The notes below the pieces were generated by a model. It saw nothing but the letters and a program-made list of their open reading frames with translations, was not told where the DNA came from and searched no databases. From positions 108,482-172,481 of the forward strand of contig RHPI01000732.1 of NCBI GenBank assembly GCA_009103225.1: a stretch of 64,000 nucleotides of DNA. The letters run 5' to 3'. The DNA is from Chlorokybus atmophyticus. Lineage: Eukaryota > Plantae > Mesostigma and Chlorokybus algae. The position numbers were made by a program, and so were the translations under genes. This document shows positions 24,401 to 52,887 of this stretch, piece by piece; the first letter of the stretch is position 1, and each line of letters begins with the position of its first letter.

Positions 24401-24996
24401 GACGACATGACGTGCGTGTGGAGGCAGCTAATGACTTCCTTACAAAGTGCGCGGACATTAACAAGGCAGCTAGGGATGCGTTATTGGTGGCACAAAATCG
24501 GCAGAAGCAGTACGCGGACGCGCATCGCCGACACCTCACGTTTCAGGAAGGCGACATTGTGTTACTCTCCGCGAAGCACGTCCAGGTGCGTACGGGAGTT
24601 CGCAAGCTGAATGAACGCTGGTTGGGACCATTTAAGGTCAGCAAAGTTATCTCGGACGTGGCGTACAAGTTGGAGCTACCCGACACCATGCGTGTGCACC
24701 CCGTTTTTCACGTCTCCCTTCTGAAAGCATATCGAGGACAACCGCCAGAAAGGCCACCCCCCGAAGTTGGCACGGACGGTGAACCCGAGTGGGAGGTAGA
24801 AGACATCCTTGGTGAGAAGTTTGTGCATGGCGTACGCAAGTTCTTAGTGAAATGGAAGGGCTATCCGTTGCATGAAGCATCCTGGGAGCCAGAGGCACAC
24901 TTGACTAATGCTCAAGACGTTGTGCGTGCCTATCTTGCTCGACGACAACCTCGCGAGCTTCGAGGACGAAGCTCACCTGGGGGGGGAGGAGTGTAA
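21349..24996 (+). CDS. pol: Pol (protease, RT, RNase H, integrase, chromodomain), -1 frame relative to gag
   Basis: LMIDSGANSNF; [20 protein letters not shown]; ACDASDTAVGAVL; AHDVPIAGH..CDAC; MDFITGLP, SDRDPRF, GQTERAN; WLGPFKV; WEVEDIL..FLVKWKGYPLHEASWEP. Frame is open from 21349 with no stops. Confidence 0.96.
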   Translation, partial: SSRQHHGAKWRGAGKRLPPVGEEATAGDRKEPHARTDAVTFPLKKQEEMALNAPMVVSYANEETTKYFGLRAHICDDQGRWRECKLMIDSGANSNFMSIDIARRYGWLSSLRGGEVKLADGEPPSGGDGAAFMTKELCVRIGKMKESMRFCCITLRNGFDGILGLPWLWQHNPAINWRKRVLTIERNGGESIQAASDVIEARHAQLGGTTIAQISYVQLRKLLSPRKAKAAWLCVVRENTAKSAPELSDDVQTATMDPEVCKLVKEYQDIMVDGLPSGLPPPRSADHRVELIEGVHKPPYRPVYKLSPLELEEAERQVADLLKRGYIRPSKSPYGAPILFVRKKNGSLRMCVDYRALNNITKRNCFPLPRIDELLEQLQGAQYFTTLDLAGGYHQIRIAPEDVEKTAFNTRYGHYEWLVMSFGLTNAPATFQTLMNSVFADLIGKGVLVYLDDILVYATTKEEHVALLRRVLQRLREHKLYAQLQKCKFLLREVEYLGHIVSHEGIKPDPNKVQVVREWAAPTNVKEVMSFLGLAGYYRKFIMGFSRIAAPLTTLLKKGKHWSWSATEEHAFAALKKALTEAPVLAHPDMEKTFILACDASDTAVGAVLQQDHGNGLQPVAFFSKKMSGAELNYPVHEKELLAQVMALRQWRCFLEGKKFVLETDHSPLRYLQTQPHLSRRQARWLEFFQLFDFDIKYKPGTSNGVADALSRLNAIEALAQVQPEWTDQIRQVLREDTEGMKVLQELENTATDTSGHWSMRDGLLWHHGRLYIPNVAHIRVKLLKEAHDVPIAGHQGLERTLASLKQRFYWREMHRDVRDYVALCDACQRVKASNQKPGGLLQPLPVPLSKWEQVTMDFITGLPKTKEGYDAILVFVDKTSKMVRLAPCSESCTAPEAARLFVKHVFRSHGLPRSIVSDRDPRFTSKFWEALHSALGTTLKFSTAFHPQTDGQTERANRVIEDMLRCYVNARQDNWEELLELVEFAINNHHNASTGVTPFLMNYGQHPLTPLTAWTPRRHDVRVEAANDFLTKCADINKAARDALLVAQNRQKQYADAHRRHLTFQEGDIVLLSAKHVQVRTGVRKLNERWLGPFKVSKVISDVAYKLELPDTMRVHPVFHVSLLKAYRGQPPERPPPEVGTDGEPEWEVEDILGEKFVHGVRKFLVKWKGYPLHEASWEPEAHLTNAQDVVRAYLARRQPRELRGRSSPGGGGV

Positions 24997-27039
24997 CAGT
25001 CAAGGCCAAATTCTGTGATTTTCATGGCCGTTTTAGGCCTTATTTGTAAGGTACATGTTTTTAATGACTTGTGGCGGATATCGGCGAGTTATGAGTCTGC
25101 CGCGGATATCGACCGGGGCCCCAAGACCAGTCCGGAAGGTGCCAGAAAACGGAGGGCCAGTCGAGAAGGGCTCGACCAGATTTCTGGAAGGGCCTGGCGC
25201 CAAGTAGTATCACTTGACCATATGAGCAGCAAATTAGGAGATCTTTGGTGCGTTGGAAAGGTCTAGAAGTGTACTACAAGATTCTGCAAGAGTATCTTAG
25301 CTTCTAGTTCTGTCTAGCGCTAGAATCGTCTAGACAGTAGCATGTGCAGACTGGTAGGTATAAAAGTGACATTCTACAACTTGCAATACAACCTTTAGCT
25401 CCCTAGTTTCTTGTGTGCAAGCTTGGTGGTGGTTAGCAGGGGTTGCTAGCGTGTGCCCACCGGTGTGTGCTTGCTTGTGTGACGATCCAAGGCGCTACAC
25501 AAGTCGGTGTGTAGCTTCGAGCGCATGCGCGTGCGTACGCGAGTGGCGGGGCGCGCGTGTGTGCTTGGCAGAGGGGGCAAGGTTCCGGTGTGAATACCGT
25601 GTCTTGGTGAGAGGGTTGTGGATTGGACCAACTCACAGGTGACAAGGCACGAGCACCGTCACAGTGAACTTCAACTCAGTTCTAATAATAGCAATCAAGT
25701 CCGCTTGCTTAAGACCTTCATTGGCGTCACACAACTCAAGGATGCGCTGCTTGTCTTTTAGAGGAAGGTTATCACGCTTGATTTGTGTGGCCATGCTGAC
25801 CTACAACAACAATCACACACTACATTACTGTTTGTGCATACACAATCACACACTGCATGTACGTGCATGCACTGCATGTGCGTTGTAAACCCTTACTTGT
25901 TGTGCGCCGCCAGCAGCGGCGCTGCAACAGCCGTGACCAGCTAGCCGCCCTACAAGTTGAGCGGCATGCCCATCAACTATACCCCGCCCGCCACCGCTGC
26001 CCCAGCCTGCGTCTCCTCACCGCCGTCGCTGCCCTCAACCTGCGTCTCCTCACCGCCGTCGCTGTCGTCCGAAGTGGCGGCGGTGATGCTTTGCAACGCT
26101 AAGTTACATTAACATACAGTGAATTACATGCATCACGCCCATCATGCTCATCACGCTGTGCGCCGTATGCATCACACTTGCACCCCCCGATACAAGCATA
26201 TCCTCACTTAAACTTACGATTTTTGCAAGGAAAAAAAATATGCTCTTCGCGGTTAGTCATATTCTCTTGAGACGCGTAATTTGCCTGTAGAACGTTTGGT
26301 AATCTCATTTTTAATGATACTAACGGGGTTATTCTCTTGAAACGAATTCTCTTGGCGGGGCTAGACTGTAGTGCACGTCGCCGCGCCAGCCGTTCGCGGG
26401 CCGTGGCCCCGAACGGAGCAGGAACGGTCCGTCCCCCGCGGACCAGGCAGTCCTGGAGAACCATGCATGGTCCGCGGGATTCGTTAAAGGACCATACATG
26501 GTCCTTCAACATCAAGCCGTGTGTTGGATGCTAGGTTACGCATGTGCGTATACAACAACAGTAAGAGTTGTTGAGGATAGTTCATGTGTTACAGGAGTAA
26601 CGCTGCTATTGAGAGGGGGTGGAAGGCGTATGTACCAACCACAACCAAGTTGTTTCATTTTGGTTCAGACCCCGTAACATGGGCCGTTTGCCACTGCTTT
26701 TGGCAGTGACAACACTTGCATGTGCACGAAGCCAGGGGTGCACAATTTAGTAATGCTGTGCCAGTGCTTGCGATTTGCCAATCTGCGCTTGAAAAGCTGT
26801 TAGTAGGACATATATGGCAATCCACAAGATCAGTTGGATGCCAGTTGCACTCGAAAGAGCTGACAGATATATAGTAAGCACTGCTAAAAGTTCACAAGCC
26901 AAGTGGAAGATCCAAAGGCTGTTGCTGTCGGACATTTGCCTTGTGTTTATGCACTTGACACGCGATACGTGAAGTTGCTGAACAGGCTGAGAGTGTGTGC
27001 CATTATTAGCAAAGCAGTAGTGAGGTTTTGCAACCAAAG

Positions 27040-32325: not shown

Positions 32326-35300
32326 ATACCTTGCTTGCAAGGCGTCTGTGGAAGCAGGGCAAGTAAGACAATCCCGTCGCCACCGCCGCCCACGCCAAGG
32401 AGACCGCCGCCAGGAGAACGTCTGTTGCGTTCCAAGGCGGTGGAATTAGGGTTTGCAAGTAAAAAGTAATTAGAATCGAAAATATCTCATAAAACACCAT
32501 ATATAACCCTAAAAGTCGTATTTTAGGCCGTATTCGAGTGGTATGACAAATGCTGCTTGGTATACTAGTATTAAAGCGTATTTTTACCCAAAATGAGTCG
32601 TATGGTGCTACTATGACGAAGAGGCCATTGTCAAGTTCATGGCACGCGTGAAGGCGTTGTGGAGAGATTTGCTCGGTGTTGGCCATGAGCTCAAAGAAGT
32701 AATGACCGTTTGGGCTGTGCTCTCAAGTTTGCTCAAGAAGTATAAGGTTGTTGTTGACTATCTTGGAGTCGTCAACAGAGGACTTGACGTTGGATGGGTG
32801 ACACCACGGCTTCTTTAAGAGGAGAGCGCTTGAGGAAGGAGGATGAAGTAGAAATCGGAACTGAACTTGGAGGTGTGGCGTTTCGCGACATTATCGACGC
32901 ATGCATATAAGAAGAAGGGCGAGTTGAGGCAGCAACGTGGAGTGTTTGAACTGTGGGGAGCGTGGTCATGTGAGGAGCAAGTGTCTCAAGTGGAAAAAGA
33001 AAAGAGCTGATAGTGAGGAGCAGGTATGTGCTTTTTATGCATCTGACGAAGGAGCAGAGTATCGTGGGTGGGTGCTAGATTCGGGAGCGAGCAAGCATCT
33101 CACAAGCGACAGGAGCAAGCTCATCAACCTCCCTCCTTTGACTGAGCCAATTGCGGTGGAAGTTGGGAACAAGAAGATGCTGGATGCTGTTGCAAAGGGA
33201 GACGCCAACCTCAGGTGCAAGGTTGGTGGTGTAGTGAAGAAGGTTGTGCTTGAAGATGAGATACTGTATGTGCAAGGTGCATCTGCTAGCTTGTTCTCAA
33301 TTCGTGTAGCCACGAGGGTTGGTGCTAGAGTTGTGTTCGATGCGACAAGGCTAGGATAGTGCTTGAGGGCGTCACACATGTAGTAGGCATTAACAAGGGC
33401 GGGTTCTATTACGTTGATGGAGGACATTGCGCACAAGGTTACAACGATAAAAAAGGTTGAGAAAAGAGCATTCAAGACATCACAGGGTCAAGGCAATAAG
33501 GAGGCACTAAACATTAATTTGAAGCGGACAAGCTTGAAGCCCGTGGGAGCTGCAAGGAGCTACAAGCAAGTGGAAGAGAGCAAGGTGGCTAAGGAAGAGC
33601 TAAGAGCTATCACCAAGGCTGGAGTTGCTACCTCAGAAAGAGAGGGGCAGCAAGAGCAGGTTGGCAAGGAGCACGTGCAGCAAAAGAGCAAGGGGTTGAA
33701 GGTCAACCAGGAGGCTTAAGTTGTTGTGGAGGACAAGTTCTTCAAGGCTAACCGCTTTTATGCGCTCATGGGAAGCATGGTGGAAAAGGTGGAGCAAGAA
33801 GCGAAGGTCAAAGACTTCTTGGCAATCGCGCACAATAAGAGAGGCAAGGCTAGCATGAGAGCTAGCGGTACATGAGCTACGAAGGCAAAGGTGTGAAGGC
33901 CAAGCTCAGCCCACGTGGGAGTGTTAAGGATATTTATACATCTAGGTCAACAGGTCAGCCGGTCACATGCCCTTAACATAGGAATAGCCGCCAGAACATT
34001 TTAGGCGAAAACTCGGGAAGGTCCAAGCGAGGAGTTCATTCAAGAGAAGGTTCCATGCGCGGCGCGGACTGGAATCTGGACGGTTCAGGCGCGGCTAGAA
34101 GAATGATGATAGCTCGGTGGCTACTCTACCATATGGCACGTATGGCGGCTTGTTGATAAGCTCTGAAAGCTAGCAACGTGGCGCAACTTTGAGCGCAGGT
34201 TATGATTGAGTGTGCTAGATGCAGTAGCTCCAAGAGTAGAAGCATGTGTAGCTGGCTGGTATAAAACCTGTGGACATAATGGCAATATATAGTCTTGTAT
34301 GGTCTCCGAGACCATACAGGAGTCTTAACGCTAGTATTGCGGCGTGCACTTGTGCATGCTTGTCATCGTGCATCTTAACACAGGCGGTAGCCCGGAAGCC
34401 TAAAGAAAGGAGCCCAAGATGATCACAAGCTTGCCTCCAGCTCCAGACCCTCACGCCCCACGAGCACACACACTACCCCCACAAGGGTGCTAGGGGAAGA
34501 GCCCCTTTAACAGCTTTAAGCCAGGCACCCCACACACAAGATAATACACTAGTAGTGCAACTCTCAGTTGCCCAACATCAAGCTACAACTTATCTTATGT
34601 ACCCCTTCCTGCTCTCCGACCTGGCACACACATTAATTAATGGCCCACACGAGCCTTTGATAGTGTGCGCTGACCTGTCATCACATGCTGACACATTCCC
34701 TACATTGGGAACATCAACCCACCTCGAGAGTATCACCTGTCACATCACTTACACCTCGGGAATGTTAAACATAGCCCTAAGGGCCCCTTAGAGGTGCTTG
34801 GACAATAACTGCCAGCAACACCTTACTGCAACTCGCAGTAGCTACAAGATGGCAATCTTAGTCACCTTTACAGGCATTCTGACGTTAACTGCCATTGGCA
34901 GTTCACAACTGCTTGCAGGCTACTAGTAGTGGCAATCTATGTCGCATCAGTGGCATACAAGGCCTTCACGGCCTGTAACATTTACAAGCTTTGTGCTAGA
35001 ATGTAGCAATGCTCTGTGTGTAGTAACACGCGCCCAAATCTTAAGGAGACTTGAACTAATCTCATGAGCACACCTGCCAAGCACCACATTGCTTACCAAG
35101 CGGGATCCTCACTCTTTCTTCTTACTTACCACATACGTCAGCAACCGAAAGTGACTTTGACTAGCCCTGTGGGCGTGGCATTCCTCCCCACTTGCATTGC
35201 AACATCAAAAAGGATGGGCCGTCTTGTCCTGCACGGTAATTGCCAGACTAGGGTGGCTAGCTCTGCCGAATCACCGCACACTACGCGTAAAAGATGCAAG

Positions 35301-38300
35301 TCACGGGAGTGACAACCAACTCGAGTATAAGGTACTGCTGCGCGCGTGTCGCATGCACATGCATCGCGACAAAGGACCATGTCCTACGAAGTGGCACCTA
35401 TGGATTTGAGTGCACTCTCCAACTCCTCTAGCTTGGCAGCACAGTTTGCCAAGTTGGAAATGGGCTCCCAGGAATGCTGCTCTTCACCATACCTGAGCGA
35501 CTTGATAAGATATTCATTGCGCTTGTACTTTTGGAACTGTTTGCCAACCATGGCTTCAACCTCATACTCCGGGTCGCCCTCGACCTCAACTGGAGGAGGA
35601 GGTGGGTGCACCGAGCCATCTCTCTTGTATGGCTTGAGCAATGCCTGGTGAAAAACATTGTGCACACGCAGACTCTTAGGCAAGTAAAAAAGCATGCTCA
35701 CAAATGTCTCCAATGATGGTAAACGGCCCCAGCCATCTGGGTAGCAGCTTACGTACTCTGCTCGTCTTGAGTCGCATGTTTTTCGCACAACAGAACCTGA
35801 TCTCCAACTTGGAGACCATCACCAAGCCTACGTCTCCTGTCGGCATACATTTTCTACCGACCTTGGGCTGCTCTCAGGGAGTCCTTCGCACCTGCTAATG
35901 CAGTGTGCATATGCTCTATAAAGTTTCTAGCCGTTGGCACTTTGCGGAACGGCTAAACTTCCAGAGACATGGGCGTTAATGAATAACCGCGACTGATGCC
36001 GAGCGACTCATGCCATGCATTGTTCACTGCAAACTCAGCCAGTGCTAAGTACCTGTCCTAGTCATTAAACCTGAGTGTAGTGCGGAAGCACATCTTCAAG
36101 CACATGATTGGCCCACTCCGTTTGTCCGTCACTCTGTGGGTGATAAGCAGTGCTAAGCTCTGCTCTGTTCCCAAATATTGACACATAGCTTGCCACAACC
36201 AACTGATAAACTCAGGTCTCTATATCGGATACCAACTCTTTGGGTATACCGTGTTTATTAACACCGTAATCACAAAGGCATACGCAAACTGTTGCACGTC
36301 GATGTCCAGGCGACATGGTACATGGTACATGGTGTACACCGGACCATCTTGGTCAAGTGTTCAACAAAGACAATGATGGCATTGTGCTCGTCCTTTGTCA
36401 CCGGCATCTGTAATCAAATCCGTACTTATGATTTCCCATTGTTTTAATAGCTAGCGGCTTGAGTAGGCCAGCTGGCTTTTTGTGTGAGGCCTTGTCTCTT
36501 TAACAAGTATCACAGCATTGACATACTTGGTTGCATCAGCAGCCAAGGTTGGCCACTAGTACTGCCTTTGCTGCTGCTTGATAGTCTTGCAAGAACTGGT
36601 CATTCCCATGTGATTGCTAGACACACTGTTGTGTGCTTTAAACAAACACTCTTGCCGAAGGCCGAGTGCATTTGACAGGATCAGCTTGCCCTCGCGATAC
36701 CATAACCCTTTATGGCAAGTGATCTTGTCATCTGCCTGCTTTAGCAACTCAACAAACCAATTGTCAAGTGCGTAAGCTCGCGGCAAACGCTCAATGATGT
36801 CCTCAACTTCCACAACCGCCGGTTCCTCCCCACTTGGGTTTGGAGACATCCATGGGTCACTGAAATCCATACCAATAGATGAATTGGCATTTGTGGTAGT
36901 TTAACATTGGCTGCAACTAAAATTTTCACCATTGGGTGCGTCAGTGGTAGGTAACGTCACATTAAACATTGCCACTGTGGCAATGTGACGTGGACGGCTA
37001 TTAATCTCACAAACTAATGATGAAGTGTGACTGTCCACACTGGTAAGTATTGTTCAACCCCCAGCTCGCGCACGCGTTGTCGCAGCTAATAACATGGGTG
37101 AACGATGCAATGGTCTGCTACGTTCATTCGACCTGGTCTATAGACCCAAGTACTACTTTAGTAAAGTTAAAATATAACAGAAACTCAGACCCACCTTGCT
37201 TGTCTCCTCGACAGGGTTGGTTGGGTCTGAAAGAAAACAAGAGGGGTGCGATCTGTGATAACTGTGAACCCGCCTTCCAGCCCCTCTAGATAGCAAAGCC
37301 ACTCTAGCAGCGCATGAACCACACCCAACAACTCTTGCTCAGTTGTGATGTAGTTTCTCTTGGCTTGAGAGAACTTTTGGCTTACATAAGCAAGTGGGTG
37401 ATTATCCTGGAGCAACACAGCTTCAGTGCCATCCAAAGATGCATCGCTGATTACCTCAAAAGGCTTTGTCAAGTCCGATAGTTGCAATACGGGAGCTGTC
37501 ACCAAGGCCTCCTTGATGGTGTCAAAGGCCTGTTGCTGCCTTTGCGTCCAACGTCACATGACCTTGTCACGCAACAGATCAGCTGGTGGAGCCACCGCGA
37601 TGAGTAACCAAGGATGTATTTTGAAAGTAGTTGCTTTGAATTAAGAATGCGCGGAACTCATGCACATTTCGAGGGCTTGGCCATTCTTTGACCTTAGCAA
37701 CTTTCTTGAGGTTTGGGCGCACGCCGTCCTTACTCACAATGTGACCCAAGAACTCTAGGTCGGTCTTGCCAAATTCACATTTCGGCATGTATGCAAAGAA
37801 TTGGTTTTGCACGCATTGTTTCCAACACCTCGCGCACATGCGCAGCGTGTGACCGCGCATCCTTGCTGAATACCAATGTGACGGTGCTCGTGCCTTGTCA
37901 CATGTGAGTTCGTCTAATCAACAACCCTCTCACCAAGGCACGGTATTCACACCGGAACCTTGCCCCCTCTGCCAAGCACACACGCGCGCCCCGCCACTCG
38001 CATACGCACGCACACGCGCTCGAAGCTACACACCGACTTGTGTAGCGCCTTGGATCGTCACACAAGTAAGCACACACTAGTGGACACACGCTAGCAACCC
38101 CTGCTAACCACTACCAGGTTTGCACACAAGACTCTACGGAGCTAATGGTTGTATTGCACATTGTAGAATGTCTGTCACGGTGATAACCCTCGACACGCAT
38201 CTCCCTCTCGCAGCCTACCGCGCATCAGGGTTGGTTCACTAACATCTCGTTCAACCGACCCAGATTTAACTAGTAGGCCTCAGCCCCGCCAATCAGGGCG

Positions 38301-39195
38301 CAACCCCTTCATGTCAACGGGCCGCGTGGCAGCCGATTGCCAGCATCGGCCTCCACCAATTGGAATGCAGTCCCTATGGCGGCGGGCCTCATTAACAGCA
38401 GACTTAGGCAACTCCCGCCGGAAGCGTCGGCATTGAGTTGCAAGTAGACGGACTGGAGCGGAAGCGGCGGTGGCACTGCCCGATACTGACCAGTGGCCCA
38501 CCTTGGAGTCGATGAGCACCCGAGGCTCAGTGAAGCAGATCCTCGTATTACTGTTAGTTCACCAAAAGCTGTTTGTGTGTTGTTAAGCATACCAATTACC
38601 CTGACAAACCGTGTTCTTGCCGTACTTGCCTTGCCCGTACACCTGTAAGTGTACACTCTTGCTCCCATGCTGGTGGCCATCGCATCTGCTACCTGCACAC
38701 TGCATCACTCTTACACTGCCGCAATGCTTGCACACACCTCACTCACTGTTCGATTGTGATTGTGCTTGCTTGCCTTTGCGCACTCGGTGATTGCAGTTTG
38801 TAATCACGTCTTACTTAGCTATAACATCTTATACACATACATTGCGTGACAAGCTGTGTGCATTTCCCAAGCATCCTTGTCCACGAGCTTGTTGACTCGC
38901 AACTCAATCCACAGCGCCGAGTCATCGCTTTCGTCGTGTGTACTCGCATTGGCCTTGCTTGCGCTCTCTGCGTGCGGTGTGCATGCCTTACATGAGTCAA
39001 GCACTCAGCTGGGGAGCACGTAGAGCAAGGTTATTCAGAGGCTTGAGGCGGGTCGAGTCGGCTATATCACTAGCGGACGCCACCCCGGATTCTCCCTCTC
39101 CAGCAGCTGACAAAGTAGGCCTCGTCAACCCACTTACGGCCGCAAGTTACTGTCTCCCCTCCCTCTTCAATCTCAGTTCTGACAGCGAAGAAGAC

Positions 39196-40750
39196 ATGGC
39201 TGCCACAGATGGCAACCGCAACCATGGAGGGAGAAGTAGTGGCAACATGAAGCTTGTCTTCACTGGAGCAGCGAACTCCATCTCTCTGATGGAATGGATC
39301 AACCGTTTCAACTCCATTATCCTCTCCGTGAAGATTCGAGCCAACAACAGCTGGGACGACCACCAGAAGTTCCGCCTTGCTGCTGATTACCTGGATGACG
39401 TCGCTGCGGCCGTGTGGCATGAAGTCGCCACCGCACACGACGTTCTCGAAGATGAGAGGCTCCTCCGCTCCAGCTCTGGCCTTGGTCCGACCATTTCAGT
39501 CGCGGAAAGGTTGGGCGCCCCTCGCGCGTTGATTGTGGCGCCCAGAGTGGCCTCACGCCCTCTACGAGAAACCACGCCTGCCCCAACCGAGGTCACCGAC
39601 ACCGGGAGCAGCGCATCAGGTACTACCATTGCCGTAACCACGCCTTTTGTGGCACCCACTATGCTGGACGGTGAGACCCCAACAAACTACATCACCAGGT
39701 GCCAAGCAGGCAGTACGGCCTTCGCCCTGGCGTTGACCACATCAGTCAACACTTCTGCTCTTTCAGCGTCCCGTCAACCACCGGTTGTTGAGGACATGTT
39801 GGAGACAGCGCCATCGCTGACACCCTGGGAAGACTTTATCACGCGTCTTAACCATCGCTTTCCTTGCTTACACCGCAAAGAAGGCTCAGGAGCTCATTCG
39901 TCTCAGGCGGAGGACCCGAGAAACTTGTGTTCAATTCTACGAGCGCGTCATCAGGCTGGTAGACGAGACCACCTTGGGCGGCATGCCGCTGCTCAATGTT
40001 CAGCATGTGGCTATTATGTACGTGGAAAATCTCGAAGAAAATCTCCGCCGGCACGTGAAGACTGCCCTGGCCGGCACGCCCGGCTACTCGCTGTGGCAGG
40101 CTTACACGAGCGCGGTATATCGGCAAGAGGAGATGGTACAGAAGCTGGCTGCTCTGGAGATCAGCGGTTTGGCACGCCAAAGCAGCAGCACCACCCCTGC
40201 TCCGACTTTCGCACCACCCAAGCACACGCGCGTAGCCCACGCCGTCGTGCGCGTCGAAGACAATCCCCACCTGACCTGCCACAGGTGCGGCAAGGAAGGA
40301 CACATCATGAGAGAATGCCCTATGCCACGCAATGATGTTCACTGCAACCATTGCGGCATGAAGGGACACCTCGAGGTAGTTTGTTACACGTTGCACCCGG
40401 CACTCCGGGAAGCCCTGAAGAGGAGCCTCTCCCCATCTGGCAGCAACAACCACAACTACACCAACAAAACCAGTTACAACAACCACAAGGGGAAGGAGAA
40501 AGCTGGCCATGGCAGCAACAGCAAGCAGAAAAGCAAAGCCGTCAAGGTAACCTCCGTCATCAGAGGCGCACCCGACCTGCCGGGCGAGAGGGACGACCTC
40601 CTCGCTCAGATTGAGGACCTTCGCAGCCGTCGAGACGAGCTGGAGGATCTCCTCAACTGTGCAAACCTAACTGCATGCTCCGCGCAGTTACGAAGGTTCG
40701 TGGGTACCACCACTCGCTCGGGCCGTATGGCAACCCCGAGGCGTGATTGA
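39196..40750 (+). pseudogene. gag: Gag-like ORF of the DNMT-gypsy (frameshifted), two CCHC knuckles
   Basis: FTGAANSISLMEWINRF..WDDHQKFRLAADYLDDVAAAVW; CHRCGKEGHIMREC and CNHCGMKGHLEVVC. Frame change near 39870. Confidence 0.75.
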
Positions 40751-43700
40751 TCCAGATCCTCGCCTGCAAGGCGTCCGCGGGTGGAGGTCACAGAGGCACC
40801 CCCGGTTATCGACCCAACGGCACATGCACAACCAACGTTGGCAGACCTGCTTCGGCCTGGCGTGGAAGGCAACGCTTAACGCTGGGGACTCATGCAGTCT
40901 CGCTTGCAAGCGCTTGCCAGATCCTACAGGTTGCCCTCCGGACGCGTGCAACAACAATCATGGGAATTACCCTAGGAAGATGGACACTTGGCCAGCCGCA
41001 CCCTTGCGTTCGCCACAGAGTTGGTACGGGCCTACTTCAGGACCCCTTTTGGACCAAGCGAGGAGGCGACACAGCTGGCTTGGATCAGCGAGCACCTTAC
41101 GCTTCTTATTCCGGAAGTGGTGCCCGCGCCACCGAACCCAACGGACACAACAAGGGAGCAACCGTTGCGCGACCGCCTGGAACAGCTGCCCAACCACCTG
41201 CCTCCCTTCACCTTGGCTAGCGCCCTTTACAGGATGCTCAGCTTGGCTGACAACACTGAAGCTGGACAGCGGACGAGGGATGAAATGAACTGGTCGCGGC
41301 GATTTGCCCAGCATCGTCTGGCTTTGGCCCACCTGGCCACCAGGTGGCCACGCACCTCTCCGTTTCTTCAGCCGCTGCGGCCACCCCACCTCAGCACTAG
41401 ATACCTCCCTCACCCAGGAGGAGAGACCGCTACGAGGATCTACGCACAACCCTGCTGTTGGAACATCACCAGGTTGCAACGGGCGGACCTGTTCCTACAG
41501 TCGCAACATGGGAGCAGGGGTTTCGAGCCCGGCTGCGATACGAACTCTAGGAGGCACTATGGCCGCGCGTATGGCCATCTTTAGAGAACGTGGAGCGATG
41601 GCACTCCAAACACTAGAGGCCACCCAGCGTGACCCATTCTTGGCAGATGTCATGGATCTCGTGCAGCGCGCGGAGGATTTGGCAGGATTGGACTACCGGG
41701 TCACCGCCAGGGTGCAAGAAATGGCGCAGCAAGTTTACCTCGTCCCCGACAACGCCCAACTCACTGCACACCTGCAGCAACGGCTACGCACTCTTGGGGA
41801 TGCCGAGGATCGCATCATCCGAGATGTGCTTGAAATCATCTATGTCCGGTTGGACAGGAACCACGAACCCCGGGGGCGCCTCCACGGTCTAGCGCAACGA
41901 TGGCTCATCACCCTGGCCAACCGCGGCACAATGGCCTACGACCTCATGGATGGTCAGCCCCTGGCTCTTCAACCACGCATGGACTTCACAACCTTACTGG
42001 TGGAAGAAGACCCCCAGCCTAGCGCACAAGCACGAGCAGTTGCACACCGCCCGGAATCGCTGCTTTCACCATCGCCACCTCGGCATACACCAGCAGTCGC
42101 CAACCTCCCTCCACCTGCAGACGCCACGCTACTTCAGCAGGTAGTTGGTGACATGCCCACCAATGCCGCCGAGCTCGGTGCGTACGCTCAACAGATGTAT
42201 CACCTGGCTAACTTGTGGCATGCCGTCCACAATGGTGAAGTAACCCCGCTACGCTACGTACGTGAGCGCGCCCGATCACGCGCTTGCATCCGGCTTCACC
42301 TCCTTTCGCAGCTACAGGACGGTACACCCGAACCTTTCCCTGGTGAAACGTCATAGTTGGCGGTGCCAGAACCTGGCTTCGCACCGGAGGCCGCACCTCA
42401 ACCGGGTCCTCAGCTGGCTACGCATGTGTACATTGTGGATGCCGCACGCCGTCGTCAAACCAACATGCCGTACCTGCCCACCGGAGGCCCGGTCACCCCT
42501 CAAGAAGAAGATTTCCATGAAGCTCTCTTGTTGGCATCCCGTGGTGCACATTGCAGGCAATAGGGCGATACCGCCACAGCCAACCCGGCTGCAGCACAAC
42601 TGCGTAGACACAGCAAGAGCGTCGCATTCAGCGAAACTCTGGCTGTTCCGTAAAACCCAGTTGCTCCAAGGCGCTACTCCCCGCAACTCGGAGGAGCGCA
42701 CACAGCAAGATACCTTGCTTGACACGCTCACACCTCGTATGGGGTACCCAGGCCGAGGGTCAAGCAACCCCAGCCCACACCGTCTCGATCAGGAAAGGCG
42801 TTCACGACAACTCCCACCTGCCTCCAGGCCTCGACCATTTGGAGTACTACTCCAGTGCAAGATGACCAGCTCCTCATGGAAGTTCGATCCCGTCTGCAAA
42901 AACTTCAGGGGCAGCTAGCTAATCTAGCAGGACCCTGGAATGACCTGGCCACTAGGCCGGAGCATCCCCGACAACGACCTGAGGAACCTCATGCTGTGGC
43001 TGGCCAACCGCAGTCACTCGATAGCCCCTCGGCTGTTCGTTAGCCCCGAAGCATGGATTGAAGACCTCGTCACTGTCCGGATGCCGCGCTTACTTACCCG
43101 AGCTGTGCATTACTGGGAGTCTCTGCCTCCCACCATGACAGCCTACCAGCGAACTACCGCCATCGAGCAACACCTCTTCAACGAATTCAGGCCGTTCCAT
43201 TGGGAGAACCAGTGCGATGATCAGCAACTTCACCATGCCACGCAGCACCACGTGGATGATGAAGAAACCAAGGACTTTCATCAACTGGTGGAAGGCCAGC
43301 TTTTTGAGGGTACGGGGGCACTAGCAGATACGCTGCACGACAGCGTGTACCCCAACCCCCTAACCGACGCGGAGACAGCTCTCATGATCGCTTATGTCAG
43401 GTTACTGCCCATCTTGCCAATCACCACGTACGGGGACCGTCGCAGTCGCAGGCACCACTAGGAGCGTGCCATCACTGCGGAAGCGCTTCAACTAGCCCTG
43501 AAAGCTGCTGCCCGGTACCTTTCACCTGCCGAAACGCCTAATCCCAGTCAGCCCAACACCTCCAAATTTCTCAGAGACTAGGTGGTGGCGAGCGTGGTAC
43601 TGTTCCCCATCAGAGCAGCATTCAACACGTGGACCGAGTATGCCATCTTTCAGCCGCGTTGGCGCCAAGGCAATGGCACCCCCGCTGCCATCCCACTGCA

Positions 43701-44212
43701 CTTGCGCACATCATACCACTATCCCCTTACACCCAGCCCTGTCCCTAACACAACCACTCCAAAGCGTCATCACCCACCTGCTCCCGCAGCGAATTTTCGC
43801 ACGCCTTGAAGTCACGCGTTGCCGCTCAAGCCGTTGGCCAGTGCTGCCTGTAGGAGGAAGAAGGGGGGCGTGGGGAGGAGACAGGTAGGGTAGATAGTGA
43901 TTTTGCGTGCGGGTCATGGCATCCGCGCGCTCGCCCTCAAGGGAGGGTGTGCATTCTAGCGCAGGAGGAGTTGCGACTGCTGCGCATTCAACGAGCAACC
44001 CACGTATTGGAGCACGTGGTAAAATATTCCCTCCACCCGCTGACAGTCCTTGCGAAATTGCCAAGCAGGACCCCAACATCCGCCGGCAATACGCACATAC
44101 AGTGGCGGCGCGCGTGGCAACCACGTCGCTCACACTGCCACCAAACGCCAACGATCCTCTTCGCACGCTTGACTTGTCCACCATTCACCTGTCACCACGT
44201 CATCGCCACCAA

Positions 44213-45150
44213 GGCCTCACTGTTTAGGAGCTTGTTGGCGGCGTTGGCAGCGGCTTGGCAGCCATTTGAAATGTCGGCTTACCAATCAGCAAGTATTTCT
44301 ATTGTGACCCCAGCCCTCAAGAACAGACAGCGGTGCCACACCACCTGGCACAGCTGCGCAAACAATACCCGCACATGGAATCATCCGCAGCGGCCGGCAG
44401 TCTGCAAGCGTTGCCTCAAGACATTCGCCTCGTCACAGGTGACCACCTGAAAGCATTAGGTGGTGTCGACATCATTGTTTCTGGATGGGAGAATGTCAAG
44501 GTCATTCTCGCGCTGGCAAGGGCCTAGGCCTTCAAGACCCACGGTCTCAGCTGTTCAAAGTTGGTTCGCATTATCCGCACCCTCCAGCAACAGCAACCTG
44601 CCAGGCCGCCCGCATACATTTGGGAAAATGTATGCTCCAAGGATAACCATCGCGCCAATGTTCGCTTCGACTACAAACGCGTTTGTACCGTCCTCGGTGA
44701 GCCAGTGGTCGTTGACGCAGCGGCTCACGGCTCTCGTGCACATCGCTTACGCAGCAAGTGGACCAACCTCGCCAAAACACAAGACCTGGTTGCTGTGCAG
44801 TCATTGTACGTACGCCTTCAGGCCTTGTGGCCGACATCTTGGTGCCCGCAGCACCCCGCAGCCAGTGACCAAGCCAGACCACACATGCTTCCACCAAAGC
44901 AACCAGGTGGGCTAGCCTATGGCTGCCTTGCCCATGTTTGTGGCTTCTCCTGGCTCCCACTCCTTTCGCAATGGCAACATCGGTATGGTCTAGGATGCCA
45001 ATCTACATTGTGTACGCGCACCACTTGCCACCAAACGCGATTTAGCCATGGGCTTCCGTCCCGGCGCCATCACGCAGGCACCCAAGCTAGCGGAACGCGA
45101 CTGTCGCGCCCTCTTTTGCCGCGCCATCAGAACAGCATGGTTTGGCTACT
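44213..45150 (+). pseudogene. Retrotransposon-encoded C5 cytosine DNA methyltransferase domain (stops and frameshifts)
   Basis: Motif I GLTV*ELVGGVGSGLAAI*NVG..YFYCD (44213-44308). LPQDI..VDIIVSGW/ECQGHSRAGKGLGLQDPRS (motif IV-V, 44465-44547). YIWENV (motif VI, 44615-32). DAAAHGSRAHRLRSKWTNL (motif VIII). AMGFRPG..RALFCRAI (IX/X, ~45045-45130). Confidence 0.88.
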
Positions 45151-45379
45151 GGAGACATGCTTGGCCCTGCAGAACAGCTACTGGCCAGTACTCAGCCCCG
45201 GACTATACGCTGGGGGGGGAGAGTGCATTGAAACCACGGACCCATCATTCGTCTCCATGGCGGTCCACAGCGCCGAACTTGAGGTTCTTGAGGAAGCATT
45301 GTACATCCCTCACACGGATGAGCCCGAGCAGGAAGGATGGAGAATTGGCTGTATGGCCTCTGGCAACATCGAGGATCAG

Positions 45380-48000
45380 TTGAAAACCCTCTTGGAAGAT
45401 CACAAGTCGCAGTTCGCACACTCCCTCAAGGACTTGGGCAAGTGTAACTTCTACGACTTCAACATAGAGCTGGACACCACCAGCCCTATCTTCAGCAAGC
45501 AGCACCCTTTGGCCAAAGTGGAAACCGAACTTATCGGGACCAACTGCAAGAAGCTGCTGGACGCCGGCCTCATCGATAAAGCAGCCCCCAGCACTCGATA
45601 CGCTGCGGCCACCGTCATGCCACTGAAAAAGGACGAGCACGGGCAATGGACACACTGCCGTATGTGAGGAGATTACCGCAACCTCAACACCCACACGGTG
45701 CTTGACCGCTACCGTATGTACACGCCTAACGAAATTTTCGATAGCGTTGGAACTTGCAGGTACTTTTTAGTCCTCGACATGCGCACTGGTTTCCACCAGA
45801 TCGGCATCCAGGATGACCACAACTGCAAGACCGCCTTCTGGGGCAACCGGACCCTCTATCAGTGGAAGGTTATGCCGTTCGGGCTGAAGAACGCACCAGC
45901 TGTCTTTCAATGCGTTATGGACCGCACCCTACGCGGGCTGGACAACTCCAGGTGCTACATTGATGACATTCTCATCTTTGGCCACACTGCAGAGTCCCAC
46001 CTACAGCACATCAAGGAGGTGTTGGAGCGGCTGAAGGAACACAACCTCACGGCCCACCCGGAGAAATGCACCTTCTTCGCCGACAAGATCCCTTACCTCG
46101 GCCACCTCATTGTCCCTAACGGTGTTATGGTGCAGCGGCAAAAGTGGACGCATTACTGGAGGTGCCACCTCCTACCGAAATCTCGCGGCTACGCTTTCCT
46201 TGGCCTGGCCAACTACTATTGTAGGTTCGTGCTGAACTTCTCGAGGATAGCCAAGCCCCTCAACGACCAGCTAAAGAAGGCAATCACTTGGCACTGGGGC
46301 GAAGCTGAGCAGCAGGCGTTTGAGGCACTCAAGAGCCATCTTCAGTCCGCACCCATACTGGCACGCCCCGACTACAGCAAGCCATTCATCCTCCACACCG
46401 ATTGGAGTCGACTTGGGCTAGAGCTGTGCTATGTCAGAAGAATGACAAGGGCAAGGAACAAGTTATTGCTTACGCCAGTCGGAGCAATAACGCTGCTGAA
46501 GCCAACTATAGCAGCTACAAAGGGGAGCAGCTTGCAGCGGTCTGGGCCATTCAGTTCTTCCGGCCATTCCTCTTTGGTTACCAGTTCGAACTGGTAATGG
46601 ACAATCAACCTCTTCAGTGGCTCCTCACCAGCAACAAGTTGACTGGTAAGCACGCCCGTCGGGCCTGCAAGAATATGATTTCACCATCACGCACAAGCCT
46701 GGCATCATCAACACCGATGTCGACGGCTTGAGTCGCAACCCCAACCCCGACACTGTGGACATCACCGGCACCCGATACGACGGTGACACTCCTCACCAGC
46801 ATTCCATGCTGATTGTGGCAGCTGGTATACGCGCAGAAGCACGCAACCCCGTGCTCCGTGCCACCATACCTCCTGCATCTGAGGGAGACATCTGTACCGA
46901 TGCCCCTACTTTGCAGCTGGTAAAGACAGGGACCTTACCCGGTGGGCTCGACCACAAGGAAGTCGATCGTGCACAGCATCGGGCCAAAAACTACACCTGG
47001 AGTAACGACACCCTTTTGCGCATTATGAACGACGGTCAGCGCAAGGAGGTATCCCAGCCTCATCGACGAGCATCCATCATCGCCAACCTCCACCACCAGC
47101 TAGGCCACTTTGAAATGAAGCGCACGGCCAACATGGTGCGCAGCGATTACTGGTGGGACGGGCTCACACGCAACGTCGCTGACGTGCTCTGGCAATGCAA
47201 CTCCTGTGACCGTATCCGTGCCAGCTTCTCGCATCGCCATCCCCAGCTTCACCCGCTGCCCATCACGGGCCTTGGTTATCGTTGGAGCATGGACTTGGCA
47301 GGCGAGTTGCGCGTCACCCGCCGTGGTAACGTATACATCCTCGTCGCCATTGAGCACTTTAGCAAGTGGGTCGAACTCATCCCCTTGCCCAACAAGTCGG
47401 CCGCAACCGTGACGCAGGTCTTCCTTGATCACATACTCAGCAGGTTCGGCGCCTGTGCCGAACTCCTCACCGACCAGGGTACTGAATTCCAGGGAGAAAT
47501 CGACGTTCTCCTCAATTGCTCGCTAATCGATCACCGCCGCACCAGCCGCGATCACCCTCAAGATGACGGGCTTGTAGGACGAATGGTACAGACAGTCAAG
47601 CAGGCACTCCGGCGCTATTATGTCACCCATCCGCAGGATGAGTGGGACGAATCCTTGCCTTGGCTTGCCCTCGGCTACGGTTGCACCCGGCAGGCGGCAC
47701 TACGCTCCTTTAACCCGTACTTCCTCATGTACGGCCGGGAGCCGTAGCTCCCTTTTCGCGTCCACCATGCCACAGAAGCAGTTGAGGACATCATCAACAA
47801 ACCCACCCACATGATGGAGGTGCTGACAGCCCGCGCCAACCTGCTCGGAGCTGCGGTACCTCTGCCCTGGCCAACCTCAAGGCCGAGCAGCGTGGGGATA
47901 AGCGCCGATACGAAAACGTGCGCAGCGGCAGCTACGTGCCTCAAACCCGCAAATTCCACCGGGGAGACTACGTCCACCGCAAGAAGCAACCACCAACACC
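45380..48000 (+). pseudogene. pol: RT, RNase H and integrase of the DNMT-gypsy (decayed)
   Basis: CRM*GDYRNLN, LDMRTGFHQI, MPFGLKNAP, CYIDDILIFG; LHTDWS, YASRSNNAAEANYSSYKGE; LHHQLGH..CNSC, MDLAGEL, IEHFSKW, TDQGTEF. Confidence 0.92.
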
Positions 48001-48174
48001 CGGGACCCAACCAGCTACGGCATGGTTTACAAGGTGGTTCAGGTGCGCGCTCAAGGCACTCTGTCACTGCGCGATCCCTCAGGCACCCTCATGACCGACC
48101 GCGTAGAGAACTGCTTCCCCTGTCTCCCGTACGTTGAAGGGCTGGGCAAACCTCGCCTGCGGGTTCGCATTCTG

Positions 48175-48335
48175 AAATGCACTGGGTGCGCCTCCTCCGT
48201 TCCGCTGTTTAAGGAGTGCAACTCTTGCTGAGAATACTGGCACTCAGCGTGCAGCCTAGGTGTCACACCTGCTGTGGCCGACCCCAACAATGCCACCACC
48301 TCCGCGCAGCTGCCATGGCACTGCCACCGGTGCCA
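48175..48335 (+). pseudogene. PHD finger (C4HC3) after integrase, one in-frame stop
   Basis: CTGC-x9-CNSC-*EYW-HSAC-x18-WHCHRC read in a single frame through TGA at 48229-31. Confidence 0.8.
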
Positions 48336-48376
48336 GGCTCATCGCGAGGGTGCCGATGACCAGGCAAGGGGGGGGG

Positions 48377-48809
48377 CTTACATGAGTCAAGCACTCAGCT
48401 GGGGAGCACGTAGAGCAAGGTTATTCAGAGGCTTGAGGCGGGTCGAGTCGGCTATATCACTAGCGGACGCCACCCCGGATTCTCCCTCTCCAGCAGCTGA
48501 CAAAGTAGGCCTCGTCAACCCACTTACGGCCGCAAGTTACTGTCTCCCCTCCCTCTTCAATCTCAGTTCTGACAGCGAAGAAGACATGGCTGCCACAGAT
48601 GGCAACCGCAACCATGGAGGGAGAAGTAGTGGCAACATGAAGCTTGTCTTCACTGGAGCAGCGAACTCCATCTCTCTGATGGAATGGATCAACCGTTTCA
48701 ACTCCATTATCCTCTCCGTGAAGATTCGAGCCAACAACAGCTGGGACGACCACCAGAAGTTCCGCCTTGCTGCTGATTACCTGGATGACGTCGCTGCGGC
48801 CGTGTGGCA
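48377..48809 (+). repeat. 433-bp apparently exact duplicate of 38987-39419 (leader plus gag start), ending at a single N
   Basis: Base-by-base identity by eye; the match stops at N48810. Confidence 0.95.
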
Positions 48810-51800
48810 NACACCACAGCTTCGGTGTCATTGGCTTGACCTCTTGCAAGCTGTCCAGTAACTTTACTCATTCTTGACACTTGCATACATCCGCGTACGC
48901 AACCCACTGCGAGACCCACCCCGCAGTCCAGGCCTGCTTGCACGACATGTCGCTTTTATACCTACCAGTCTGCACATGCTACGGTCTAGACGATTCCCGT
49001 GCTACACAAAACTAGATGCTAAGATGTTATTGCAGAACCTTGTAGTATACTCATAGACCTTGATTACGCACCACAGATCTCCTGATTAGGTGCTCGTATA
49101 GTCAAGTTATATTACTTGGCGCCAGGCCCTTCCAGAAATCTGGTCGAGCCCTTCTCGACTGGCCCTCCGTTTTCTGGCACTTTCCGGACTGGTCCTTGTG
49201 CCCCGGTCGATATCCGCGACAGACTCATAACTCGCCGATATCTGCCACAAGTCATGAAAACGTGGTGCTCGATACATGGGCCAAAAAAGACCCTAAAATC
49301 ATGAAACTTGGCCTCGACTGTTACAACCAAGATGTTATCAAGTTACACAAGCACAATCTTGCCTATCAGCTTGTGAAAGACACGGTTCATCATAGCTTGA
49401 AAGGTGGTTGGCGTATTCTACAGCCCCAAAGGCAGTACTTTGTACTTGAAGTGGCGAAGCGGCGTACGAAACGCTGTCTTAGGCACATCTTCCGGTGTAG
49501 CACGGATCTGATGGTATCCACTAATCAAGTTCAAGGAGCTGAACACTGAGGCGCCGCTCAGTTGATCAAGCAAGTCATCTATCTTCGGTAGTGGGTACCC
49601 GTATTCTTGTTGGTTAGCTGGTTCAAAGCCCTGTAATCCACGCACATGCGAGTCCAACATCCGTTTTCGGTACGAAAAGGATGGGTGCTCCAACTTGAAA
49701 GGGAGAGCTACTTGGGGCTAGCACCCCTTTGTTGAGCAAGGCCTTGATCTGCCCCATCACGCCTGCATACTCAGCTGGACTGAGTCTGTACACAAGCCCA
49801 AATGGAGGTTGCGCACCTTGTTCAAGAGGGATCGTATGCCATACGTTCCTCTCAGGCGGCAATTTAGGCATACTAGCTGTAAACACATCCGATTACTTAT
49901 GCAGCAGAGCATCCAAGCCAAAATGACGTAACCGACCATTAGACTCACCATTTGGCATGGTCACAGAGTCACCAGTGGCAGTCTGATGTTGAATGCCATT
50001 TGCTCACCGATTGGCATTTTGCTGTCAACCGCAGTGGTTGTCTTTGTCAGCATCATAAAAATGGGGTTGTGCTCCATATCAAACAGCTTTTTTAACATGC
50101 ATGGCACTCAACAAGGGTGATGAGACACATGTTGAGTTATAAATGACAGGAGTGGAAGCGTCATCACTCGCAACTGCCCGCATGGTCACAACCTGGTCCT
50201 TTGCGCACATTGCAAACCTTGGTGTCCGCATCAGTGCATAAGCCACATGCATGTTCCCAACGACTGCCAACAATGACATCAACGCCAGGCACGTCGACCG
50301 GGATCATCATGAACTGCAATTGTGCATGGTATCCTTGAACACGCAAGGACAAACGCACAGACCCGCGCATAGGGATCTCATGCTTATCTAGTGCAACTAC
50401 TAACTCACTAGACCCTTGACTTGTATGCCTAGGCCTTGCACGAGAGACTCATGAAGTTCTCTGGCGTGCCAATTTCTATCATAAGAACAGCTGGCACATG
50501 TGCAATCGACGCTTTAAACAACCAAGTCAGGTCCAAGTCACTTACTCGGTGGAGAACTGGTGGATCATACACAATCCGTAATGAGCAACCAACGCCGGAA
50601 TGTCTCTTGTCAACCTCTCGCAACACCTGCATGCCCTTAAGAAGGTGCAACCATGCCCCTCCGTACTTACCCATCATCACATATGCACTGGTATTGTGTG
50701 CGCGCTCTTGCTCTTACACTTAACATAGTGCTTGAGAACAATGGTCAACTGATAAAAGGCGCATTCAACAACACTTGTTGACTAGCACAATCATGTTGCA
50801 AAACGTTGACATCAACCGGCACACCCATATCAATGTTCCCAATTGCAACATTGGCAATGTTGCAATTGGGCGCAGTGCTTCCGCGTGAATATGAAACCAA
50901 GAGCGACACCGCTTTGGCCTCATTGCCAGGCTACACATCAGCAGCATGCATCACGCGCTTACTACCCAACAACCGGTCACGTCAGCAACAATAAGATTCT
51001 TTTCTTTCGCATTAAACATTTCAGATCAAAAATCTAGGTGAGGCATCATCTTGTTGGCGTTGGCGGCTGCCACCTTGGCCAGCTCCTGCTCATGTTGCTC
51101 CATTTCAGGTAGCATTTGTAGCAGTCAGCTCCGCATGTTGCTGTTGTATGGTTGCCATCTGTTCCTTCAGTTCAACGATGTAAGTTGCCATGCAGCTTCA
51201 GAGTCAACCGTTCGATGTCGATGATGACGGGGAATGTCAAACCGCTGCTTGCACAAGCACGTACTAAGTTTTTGGTGCAACAACACACCTGCATGCAAGC
51301 AACCAGGTGTGCGGGGTAGCAAGAACAAGCTAACACACGCACAATTGACGTGACACAAGCCTGAAAGCGCCCATACTCAGCATGCAAGAGTGTGCACAAA
51401 GCTGGATGTCAATACGCGATCAACAAAACCATGTATCATGCATCATCATCTCGCGGCATCACCACACAGTGCATGCAAGCAAACAATGCCACACCTGCAC
51501 GGCACAGCAAGAACACATGCCAATGGACGCATGCAAGGCTTGAATCGCAAGCTCCAAGTCAAATGTAACACTGGGTACTTACTTACCTGCTCTATAGCAC
51601 TCCCTAACTTGTGTACGCACACAAGGACTTTATCAAGCAAGAAAGTACAGCATCCAGGAGGTAGCTCGGAAGCACCAAGAAAGGAGCGCAAGATGACCAC
51701 AAGCTCTCACCTCAAGCTCCAGACCTTCACGCCCCACGAACATACACTACCCCCACAAGGGTGGTAAGGGAAGAGCCCCTTTAAATAGCTCCAAGCTAGG

Positions 51801-52887
51801 CACCCCACACATAAGATGGTACACTAGTAGTGCAACTCCTATGTGCCCAACACAGGGCTGCAACTTAGCTTATGTACCCCTTGCTACTCTTCGACCTGGC
51901 ACACATATTAATCAATGGCCCGCACGAGCCTTGACAATATGCGCTGGCTTTTTAGCACATGCTGACATATTCACTACATCGGGAACATCAACCCACCTCA
52001 GGATTATCATCTGTCACGTCGCTTACACCTCGAAAATGTTAAATATAGCCCTAAGGGCCCCTTAGAGGTGCTCGGACAATAACCGCCATCAACACCTTAC
52101 TGCATCTCGCAGTAGCTACAAGATAGCAATCGTGGTCACCTTCATATGCAGTCTGACGATAACTGCCATTGGTGGTTCACAACTGCTTGCAGGCTGCTAG
52201 TAGTAGCAACATATGTCACATCCGTGACATACAAGGCCTTCACGGCCTGTAACATTAACAAGCTTTGTGTTGAAATGTATCAATGCTCTGTGTGTAGTAA
52301 CATGCCCTAGAATCCCAAGGATGCTTGGATTAACCTCATGAGCACACCTGCCAAGCACTACATAACTTGACAAGCGGGATCCTCACTTAGTTCTGCTTAC
52401 TTACCACATAAGTAAGCAACCGAGAGTAACTTTTACCAGCCCAGTGGGCATGGCAAGATGGGCTGTGCTCGCTGCAATGCTAATACTTAAAAGGAAAGTT
52501 GATGCATGTTGATGTATATGTATGCCATGTGTTTCATCTATTCTTGTATGAATCTCATGCAAGACCTTACAACAGCTCTTGAATATATGTAACAATAATA
52601 ATGTCGTTGTCGCTTTTGATGAAATGCGATGATGACATTGTAATCAAATGTCACCCATGCATGATATTCAATAGTACAACGCATATTCTTAGGTATATGC
52701 TATGTCACTTCGTCATATGTTTTAAGAATGTACCATGTTTGATAACACACTTTATAAGGGTACGCATGTATACGGGGTGCTGCATCATGCATGCTGACAT
52801 ATATGCGCACTCTGTGCATGTCGGCCGCGGCGCGGCCTCTGAAGCGTGCATGCAGCCACACCGGAGGGGTGGGGTGGTGGTGGTGGT

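Follow-up and report, generated by a model that had tools for sequence, protein, structure and literature searches.

Elements of the KnitGypsy-Dnmt3 type, described from the alga Klebsormidium nitens, carry intronless Dnmt3-type DNA methyltransferase (DNMT) domains inside a Gypsy Pol, have DIRS-like repeats in the layout A-coding-B-A-B and show Ka/Ks values below 0.2 (de Mendoza et al. 2018, PMC5890265). A preprint names the kind 'streptophytes (Gypsy-DNMT3)' (bioRxiv 10.64898/2026.05.21.726589). The SymbioDIRS-Dnmt3 elements of Symbiodinium, treated as an independent acquisition, are the only ones for which de novo CG methylation has been demonstrated (PMC5890265). Here we analysed a 64,000-nt stretch of the genome of Chlorokybus atmophyticus (contig RHPI01000732.1, positions 108,482 to 172,481, forward strand), referred to as the window, whose own numbering is used throughout. 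Positions 38173-48946 are very probably a single integrated, long-dead Ty3/Gypsy copy of the Gypsy-Dnmt3 kind, with gag (CCHC), protease, a Dnmt3-type DNMT, reverse transcriptase (RT), RNase H, a DDE integrase and a PHD finger. The kind was already described in 2018, and the window copy is a new example of it, not a new kind. We found no literature on DNMT retrotransposons in Chlorokybus.

The methyltransferase domain occupies the following interval.

44210-45128, plus strand: decayed Dnmt3-type C5 cytosine methyltransferase domain, recognised by family profile and tblastn.

In translations of 44101-45302, the C5 methyltransferase motifs were found in canonical order, scattered over three forward frames. 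Motif I (ELVGGVGSG) lies in frame 2, flanked by stops at 44225 and 44267, and the same frame continues with KYFYCD and on to SGW at 44480-44488. Owing to two extra bases at 44489-44490, the reading goes on in frame 1 with ECQGHSRAG and then DPRSQLF, and a break at 44554 returns it to frame 2 with LVRIIRTL, WENV and AHRLRSKWTN, while MGF...ALFCRAI is read in frame 0. An earlier note on this DNA, made from the letters alone, had listed these motifs apart from LVRIIRTL, the two stops, and breaks near 44490 and 44560, all of which we confirmed. It had also expected more frameshifts downstream. With an intact relative as guide, and by string location, we placed frameshifts at about 44797 and about 44842, additional stops at 44913 and 44991, and a last frame change between 45128 and 45269, ahead of the RT homology that begins at 45269-45374. 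The domain thus carries four in-frame stops and five frameshifts. The note's further statement that RT follows closely with no stop between the two domains holds in part: frame 2 is stop-free from 44528 to 45664, yet a frameshift parts DNMT from RT in the window copy. Across the frame pieces, motifs I, IV (with the catalytic Cys), VI (ENV), VIII (RxR) and IX/X are all present. At invariant columns of the family alignment the window has G, C, S, E, N, H, R, R and W; it has kept the catalytic Cys, the Glu of ENV and the residues of RxR in spite of the frameshifts.

Relatives were gathered by an exhaustive HMMER search with the open reading frame (ORF) 44561-45664 as query. At E values of 0.001 or below it returned 402 proteins, of which many are 1100-3400 residues long and match both the DNMT piece and the start of RT. 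Pfam annotated RVT_1, RNase H, integrase and often PHD in these proteins, and DNA_methylase above threshold in several; the intact relatives P0040, P0087 and P0001 reached 46, 35.5 and 33.7 bits against the PF00145 cut-off of 22 bits. A family profile of 330 positions was then built from an alignment of 15 intact retroelement DNMT domains and searched against 2797 stop-free pieces from all six frames of the window. Its matches at the DNMT locus were colinear, covering profile positions 34-107 (E 1e-15), 107-129 (6e-9), 130-217 (7e-31), 250-274 (2e-5) and 281-319 (0.37), and the best match elsewhere in the window had an E of 0.9. When the pieces were joined with an X at every break, the domain scored 311 bits over profile positions 19-318 of 330; this joined form served for the profile score and for a tree. 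In addition, tblastn of intact polyproteins onto the DNMT stretch gave E values of 1e-26 to 1e-37. Judged from its sequence, the locus is confirmed as a decayed C5 cytosine methyltransferase domain.

The element around this domain comprises the following features.

38173-48946, plus strand: whole Gypsy-DNMT element, a 10,774-bp insertion that starts with TGTCAC and ends with CACGAC.
38173-38986, plus strand: unique 5′ head, 814 bp.
38987-39419, plus strand: direct repeat A1, 433 bp, which includes the first ATG of the gag-like frame.
39824-40468, plus strand: gag-like region with a CCHC zinc knuckle at 40274-40321 (Pfam zf-CCHC, E 2.6e-6).
40750-43570, plus strand: about 2.8 kb without recognisable homology, including a 350-aa ORF at 41304-42356.
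43576-43773, plus strand: possible protease remnant, a weak tblastn match.
45374-46420, plus strand: reverse transcriptase with an in-frame stop at 45665 (Pfam RVT_1, E 1.2e-30).
46423-46665, plus strand: RNase H, entered through a frameshift at about 46420 (Pfam RT_RNaseH_2, E 1.6e-11; tblastn 51-56% identity).
46665-47753, plus strand: DDE integrase (H2C2 zinc finger and rve core), entered through a frameshift at about 46665.
48178-48333, plus strand: PHD-finger remnant downstream of the integrase, with an internal stop (Cys/His pattern).
48368-48376, plus strand: run of nine G, resembling a polypurine tract, directly before A2 (read from the sequence).
48377-48809, plus strand: direct repeat A2, cut short in the assembly by a single N at 48810.
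48811-48946, plus strand: unique 3′ tail, 136 bp, up to the target-site duplication.

The insertion is bounded by a target-site duplication, ATGTC, at 38168-38172 and 48947-48951 (TGTC instead if the element ends in CA). Comparison of the window with itself showed that it interrupts a minus-strand copy of a 675-nt long terminal repeat (LTR), since 19993-20296 matches 38172-37870 and 19617-19997 matches 49325-48947, with 5 bases in common. Within the element, the Ty3/Gypsy Pol order of RT, RNase H and DDE integrase is present by Pfam and by tblastn colinearity. The window RT is 42% identical to that of P0040 by tblastn and 55% identical to that of P0177, its nearest neighbour in the RT tree. 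The integrase is supported by rve (E 9.7e-12) and Integrase_H2C2 (E 8.4e-11) and by tblastn matches of 38-47% identity. Of the PHD-bearing tails of P0008 and P0004, used as tblastn queries, that of P0008 matched the PHD remnant at E 4e-6, and the pieces of the remnant gave nothing against Pfam. The single protein P0163 aligns over 784 residues from DNMT through RT (44210-46420) and onward through RNase H and integrase. The position of the DNMT between the protease trace and RT is colinear with relatives that encode both in a single ORF, although the frame itself is broken in the window copy. These results bear out the earlier assignment to the retrotransposon-borne methyltransferases of de Mendoza et al. 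(2018), here of the streptophyte Gypsy-Dnmt3 type with the domain directly upstream of RT in Pol.

The gag-like region was matched in tblastn by the gag part of P0179 (E 5e-8) and by the Closterium protein P0178 (E 1e-8). The stretch 40750-43570 had no Pfam match, no tblastn match from the N-termini of the relatives and no usable match in the ESM Atlas, and the spacer from gag to protease is about 2 kb longer in the window element than in intact relatives. The protease trace consists of tblastn matches to the protease regions of P0179 (residues 751-814, E 0.064) and P0176 (residues 852-893, E 0.24), and a regular-expression search of the region gave no convincing D[ST]G[AS] motif. Pfam searches of the ORFs between gag and DNMT, and of those beyond the integrase, returned nothing.

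Pol as a whole has about 15 disabling lesions. Past the DNMT these include the RT stop at 45665 and frame changes at about 46420, at 46665, at 47753-47864 and at 47989. Because the stops and frameshifts in the DNMT are accompanied by breaks in RT, RNase H, integrase and PHD finger, the window copy is dead and no enzyme can be made from it. The earlier suggestion that this copy might methylate its own cDNA is thus impossible.

Two public runs from two studies, X1 and X2, contained short contigs identical to parts of the locus. The earlier note had proposed a search for paralogues of the DNMT stretch, and the same runs also contained paralogues of 85-92% identity within 44206-45152, covering 44206-44490 and 44697-45152. 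In one paralogue contig a TT follows 44553; it then reads QLFSKLVRII, in agreement with the family consensus, so the frameshift at 44554 is private to the window copy. Paralogues with the DNMT thus occur, which answers the refuting condition that the note itself had named. A separate low-depth contig in X2 joins 45478 to 48692 and skips 3213 bases; it may be a deleted derivative or a chimera.

The two A repeats are identical at 433 of 433 bases and are the only internal repeat of the element. The 814-bp head and the 136-bp tail had no copy in the element or in the window (blastn with word size 7; local alignment at the level of shuffled sequence). A similar head-to-A junction was seen in a paralogue contig from X1 (loose end at 48393). 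Joining the element ends would make the palindrome GACA/TGTC, and a search inside the element for this junction, with three mismatches allowed, found only the real 3′ end and a match at chance level. No pair of B repeats was found in the window element, whose 3′ end is interrupted by the N at 48810.

If the copy decayed in place, two A repeats without a single difference do not fit well with about 15 lesions in Pol. By a rough estimate of a few percent divergence, about 25 differences between A1 and A2 would be expected after decay in situ. Possible explanations are the mobilisation of a defective copy in trans, gene conversion, a collapsed tandem and a gap-filling artefact. The first of these, in which the element would be a recently mobilised, non-autonomous copy that was already defective when intact relatives copied it in trans, would make the locus young and its genes dead, and the insertion is indeed the innermost of three nested elements. 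However, the identity of A1 and A2 stops exactly at the assembly N, A2 begins after the run of nine G, and gap filling, repeat collapse or gene conversion explains the identity equally well. Moreover, the runs contained no set of near-identical copies (95-99%), their contigs being either at least 99% or mostly <90% alike. We therefore consider recent mobilisation in trans rather unlikely, if a serious contender, and keep to a copy that has been dead for a long time.

The type of the methyltransferase was assessed with the family profile against known enzymes. Human DNMT3A was matched at E 2e-23, DNMT3B and DNMT3C at about 4e-20 and plant DRM at 2.5e-15; the bacterial enzymes M.HaeIII and M.HhaI fell in the range 6e-11 to 5e-9, with M.HaeIII at 6e-11. 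In bits of profile score, DNMT3A, 3B and 3C reached 75-86, DRM 51-60, the bacterial enzymes 38-45 and Dnmt2 19-29. A separately acquired methylase of the bacterial or viral restriction-modification type, as opposed to a Dnmt3 derivative, would account for the Q after the catalytic Cys in motif IV, which is found in the PCQ of bacterial enzymes and Dnmt1, whereas Dnmt3 has N. Such an origin is nevertheless very unlikely: the three DNMT3 enzymes score 30-45 bits over M.HaeIII and M.HhaI, the alignment with DNMT3 runs through the entire catalytic domain and takes in the C-terminal motif IX/X region, and the published analysis also groups the Gypsy-borne domains with Dnmt3 (PMC5890265). A Dnmt3-type origin remains our reading of the domain.

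More than 160 full-length DNMT domains of this family were present in sequence databases, from Closterium, Haematococcus, Monoraphidium and many environmental contigs, so the class, which the earlier note had called rare, is not rare there. When domain order was tabulated for 233 retrieved proteins (P0001-P0233), two positions of the DNMT within Pol emerged. In class I, which comprises about 35 of the 233 proteins, including the Closterium proteins and P0179, the DNMT precedes RT, as it does in the window. In class II (about 110 of the 233), which includes proteins of Haematococcus lacustris and Monoraphidium neglectum, the order is RT, RNase H, DNMT, integrase, PHD. The class I proteins P0040 and P0179 have CCHC/protease, DNMT, RT, RNase H and integrase in one ORF, with PHD as well in P0179, and the closest named relatives of the window element are Closterium proteins with the order CCHC, protease, DNMT, RT, RNase H, integrase.

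The same division appeared in trees of both domains. In the DNMT tree (127 rows), class II rows and fragments lie on one side of a branch with an SH-like approximate likelihood ratio test (SH-aLRT) value of 99, and the window lies opposite with class I; the RT tree (68 rows) has the same split, again at SH-aLRT 99. The group with DNMT before RT to which the window belongs has 17 rows in the DNMT tree and 7 in the RT tree, with SH-aLRT 99 in each. Both trees came from quick searches without outgroups and do not give the direction of relocation. These results also bear on whether the DNMT stretch is a piece of a host Dnmt3 gene, or was placed beside a Gypsy RT by faulty assembly, an idea that the much broken state of the copy, the lack of Pfam matches for its single pieces and the N runs of the scaffold (one of them inside the element, at 48810) might encourage, but that is hardly credible because the stretch is colinear with intact polyproteins having DNMT and RT in one ORF, falls in the same architecture class in the DNMT and RT trees, lacks any intron-like interruption and is covered by paralogous contigs in the runs of two independent studies.

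We consider it an even question whether the following wider picture is correct. Gypsy-Dnmt3 would be an old, widespread clade of the green lineage, present in chlorophytes and streptophyte algae, and not a capture confined to Klebsormidium; its DNMT would have moved once within Pol, its members would have an ECQ loop and usually a PHD finger on the integrase, and the window copy would be a decayed member with the DNMT before RT. We found no literature on the two-position pattern or on the second architecture. A precomputed Pfam PF00145 match was lacking for about half of the listed proteins, most of these belonging to class II, and this could be the reason that class II has drawn little notice. 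If the wider picture is right, about half of the clade would lie below PF00145 and would be missed by surveys that count domains.

Two contigs that carry intact relatives were inspected for repeats. P0179, the closest full-length relative with the same architecture, is encoded on L001:1-18272 (ENA contig ctg159469_5x_c, sample ERZ25067493), which repeats perfectly with a period of 8261-8262 bp over 2.2 units and is either a tandem array or an over-assembled circular molecule. The region around P0176, L002:6595-17184, is arranged as A-coding-B-A-B, with A at 7368-7910 and 15465-16007 and B at 15146-15442 and 16038-16334, and the layout of KnitGypsy-Dnmt3 is thereby confirmed in an intact relative. 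L002 additionally has outer direct repeats at 6595-7040 and 16355-16801 and an inverted part-copy of A at 16798-17184.

Catalytic residues were counted in 167 full-length retroelement DNMT domains. The catalytic Cys, the Ser that follows it and the ENV Glu are each present in 167/167, and the two Args of motif VIII in 165/167 and 166/167. The residue preceding the catalytic Cys is E in 124 domains, P in 35 and another residue in 8. The ECQ loop to which the earlier note drew attention is present in the window; it is not special to this copy, as E-C-Q is the family norm.

In intact members, gag through PHD form one ORF. The DNMT would therefore be made with the polyprotein, adjoining RT on its N-terminal side, and would sit beside RT in the particle, in place for the cDNA. 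On the simplest reading it would methylate cytosines of the newly made cDNA, as was also proposed by de Mendoza et al. (2018, PMC5890265); the nucleophile would be the invariant Cys in the E/P-C-Q loop, acting with the ENV glutamate and the RxR arginines. Substrates other than cDNA, namely RNA or host DNA, may also be considered, and any benefit to the element is likewise presumptive. The strict conservation of the catalytic residues in many diverged intact polyproteins from green algae argues that activity is retained and that the enzyme does something useful for the element. The sole published assay was inconclusive on this point: in yeast, only the dinoflagellate DIRS-type domains methylated CG de novo, and the Gypsy-type domain gave no signal, a result that the authors themselves call inconclusive (PMC5890265). 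The earlier statement that some members of the class methylate CG de novo thus stands for the DIRS type and is not established for the Gypsy type.

As a dead relic, the locus by itself alters little, other than adding a data point for Dnmt3-bearing Gypsy elements beyond Klebsormidium. To judge from its relatives, the methyltransferase and its invariant catalytic residues seem to have been preserved in many green algae and at two positions in Pol. Intact relatives such as P0179 on L001 are natural candidates for a test of activity.

Other Gypsy elements were observed in the window. The DNMT element is part of a triple nesting at 34381-52455. The outermost member is an old minus-strand Gypsy with LTRs of about 800 bp (34381-35180 and 51655-52455, 86% identical), its RT (49674-49301 and 37782-37092) is split by a solo 675-nt LTR (49325-48947 and 38172-37870), and this LTR is itself split by the DNMT element. 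A young Gypsy without DNMT lies at 19614-25663; its 675-nt LTRs, at 19614-20288 and 24989-25663, show 99.7% identity to each other. Two of its ORFs are intact, a gag-like one at 20243-21409 and one of 1177 aa at 21463-24996, which encodes a protease motif (DSGA), RT, RNase H and integrase. The RT-RNase H region is 41% identical to that of P0179.

Several observations weigh against assigning the window element to the Gypsy-Dnmt3 kind with a functional type of enzyme. When single stop-free pieces of the window were compared with Pfam, the best PF00145 match had an E of 0.2 and 11.5 bits, below the cut-off of 22, and a direct search of three window pieces against PDB sequences gave no methyltransferase match. 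Because no piece is significant alone, the DNMT call depends on the profile made with domains of its relatives. Only a faint trace of the protease is seen (E 0.06), and the 2.8 kb between gag and protease show no homology. The published A-coding-B-A-B layout is unconfirmed in this copy, in which A is seen twice and an assembly gap cuts the 3′ copy. No match named Klebsormidium appeared among the database matches of the relatives, and kinship to the published Klebsormidium family would follow from architecture and Dnmt3 type only. Finally, activity of a Gypsy-type enzyme has never been demonstrated.

Among solved structures, the best match of the family profile is the catalytic domain of human DNMT3A (for example PDB 2qrv), with the motifs aligned. 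DNMT3A differs from the window domain in its P-C-N loop; it is encoded by a host gene, has the reader domains PWWP and ADD and belongs to no polyprotein. SymbioDIRS-Dnmt3 shares with the window a Dnmt3-type domain in a retrotransposon Pol, but as a DIRS element of another host kingdom it has a tyrosine recombinase, whereas the window has an integrase of the DDE type (rve) with an H2C2 finger.

Class II elements (Haematococcus lacustris KAJ9527864.1, Monoraphidium neglectum MNEG_11595 and many metagenome contigs) have a homologous DNMT, 33-39% identical to that of the window across roughly 200 residues. Its invariant residues are the same and its loop is mostly ECQ, and the elements also share the integrase and PHD tail. 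In contrast to the window, their DNMT lies between RNase H and integrase, and they form a separate clan in the trees of both domains. Class I polyproteins (Closterium sp. NIES-53/54/65, for example CAI7886383.1, and P0179, P0176, P0040, P0163 and P0177) have the domain order of the window and share its GWECQG motif IV, with 43% DNMT identity (P0179) and 55% RT identity (P0177). They are intact single ORFs of 2100-2400 residues, whereas the window element has about 2 kb extra before the protease and carries lesions. KnitGypsy-Dnmt3 differs from the window element in its host alga, and the window copy is dead and its B repeats were not found. The two are alike in being Ty3/Gypsy elements with a DDE integrase, an intronless Dnmt3-type DNMT inside Pol and repeats that are not a simple LTR pair, and the window element, like KnitGypsy-Dnmt3, is probably multi-copy in a streptophyte alga.

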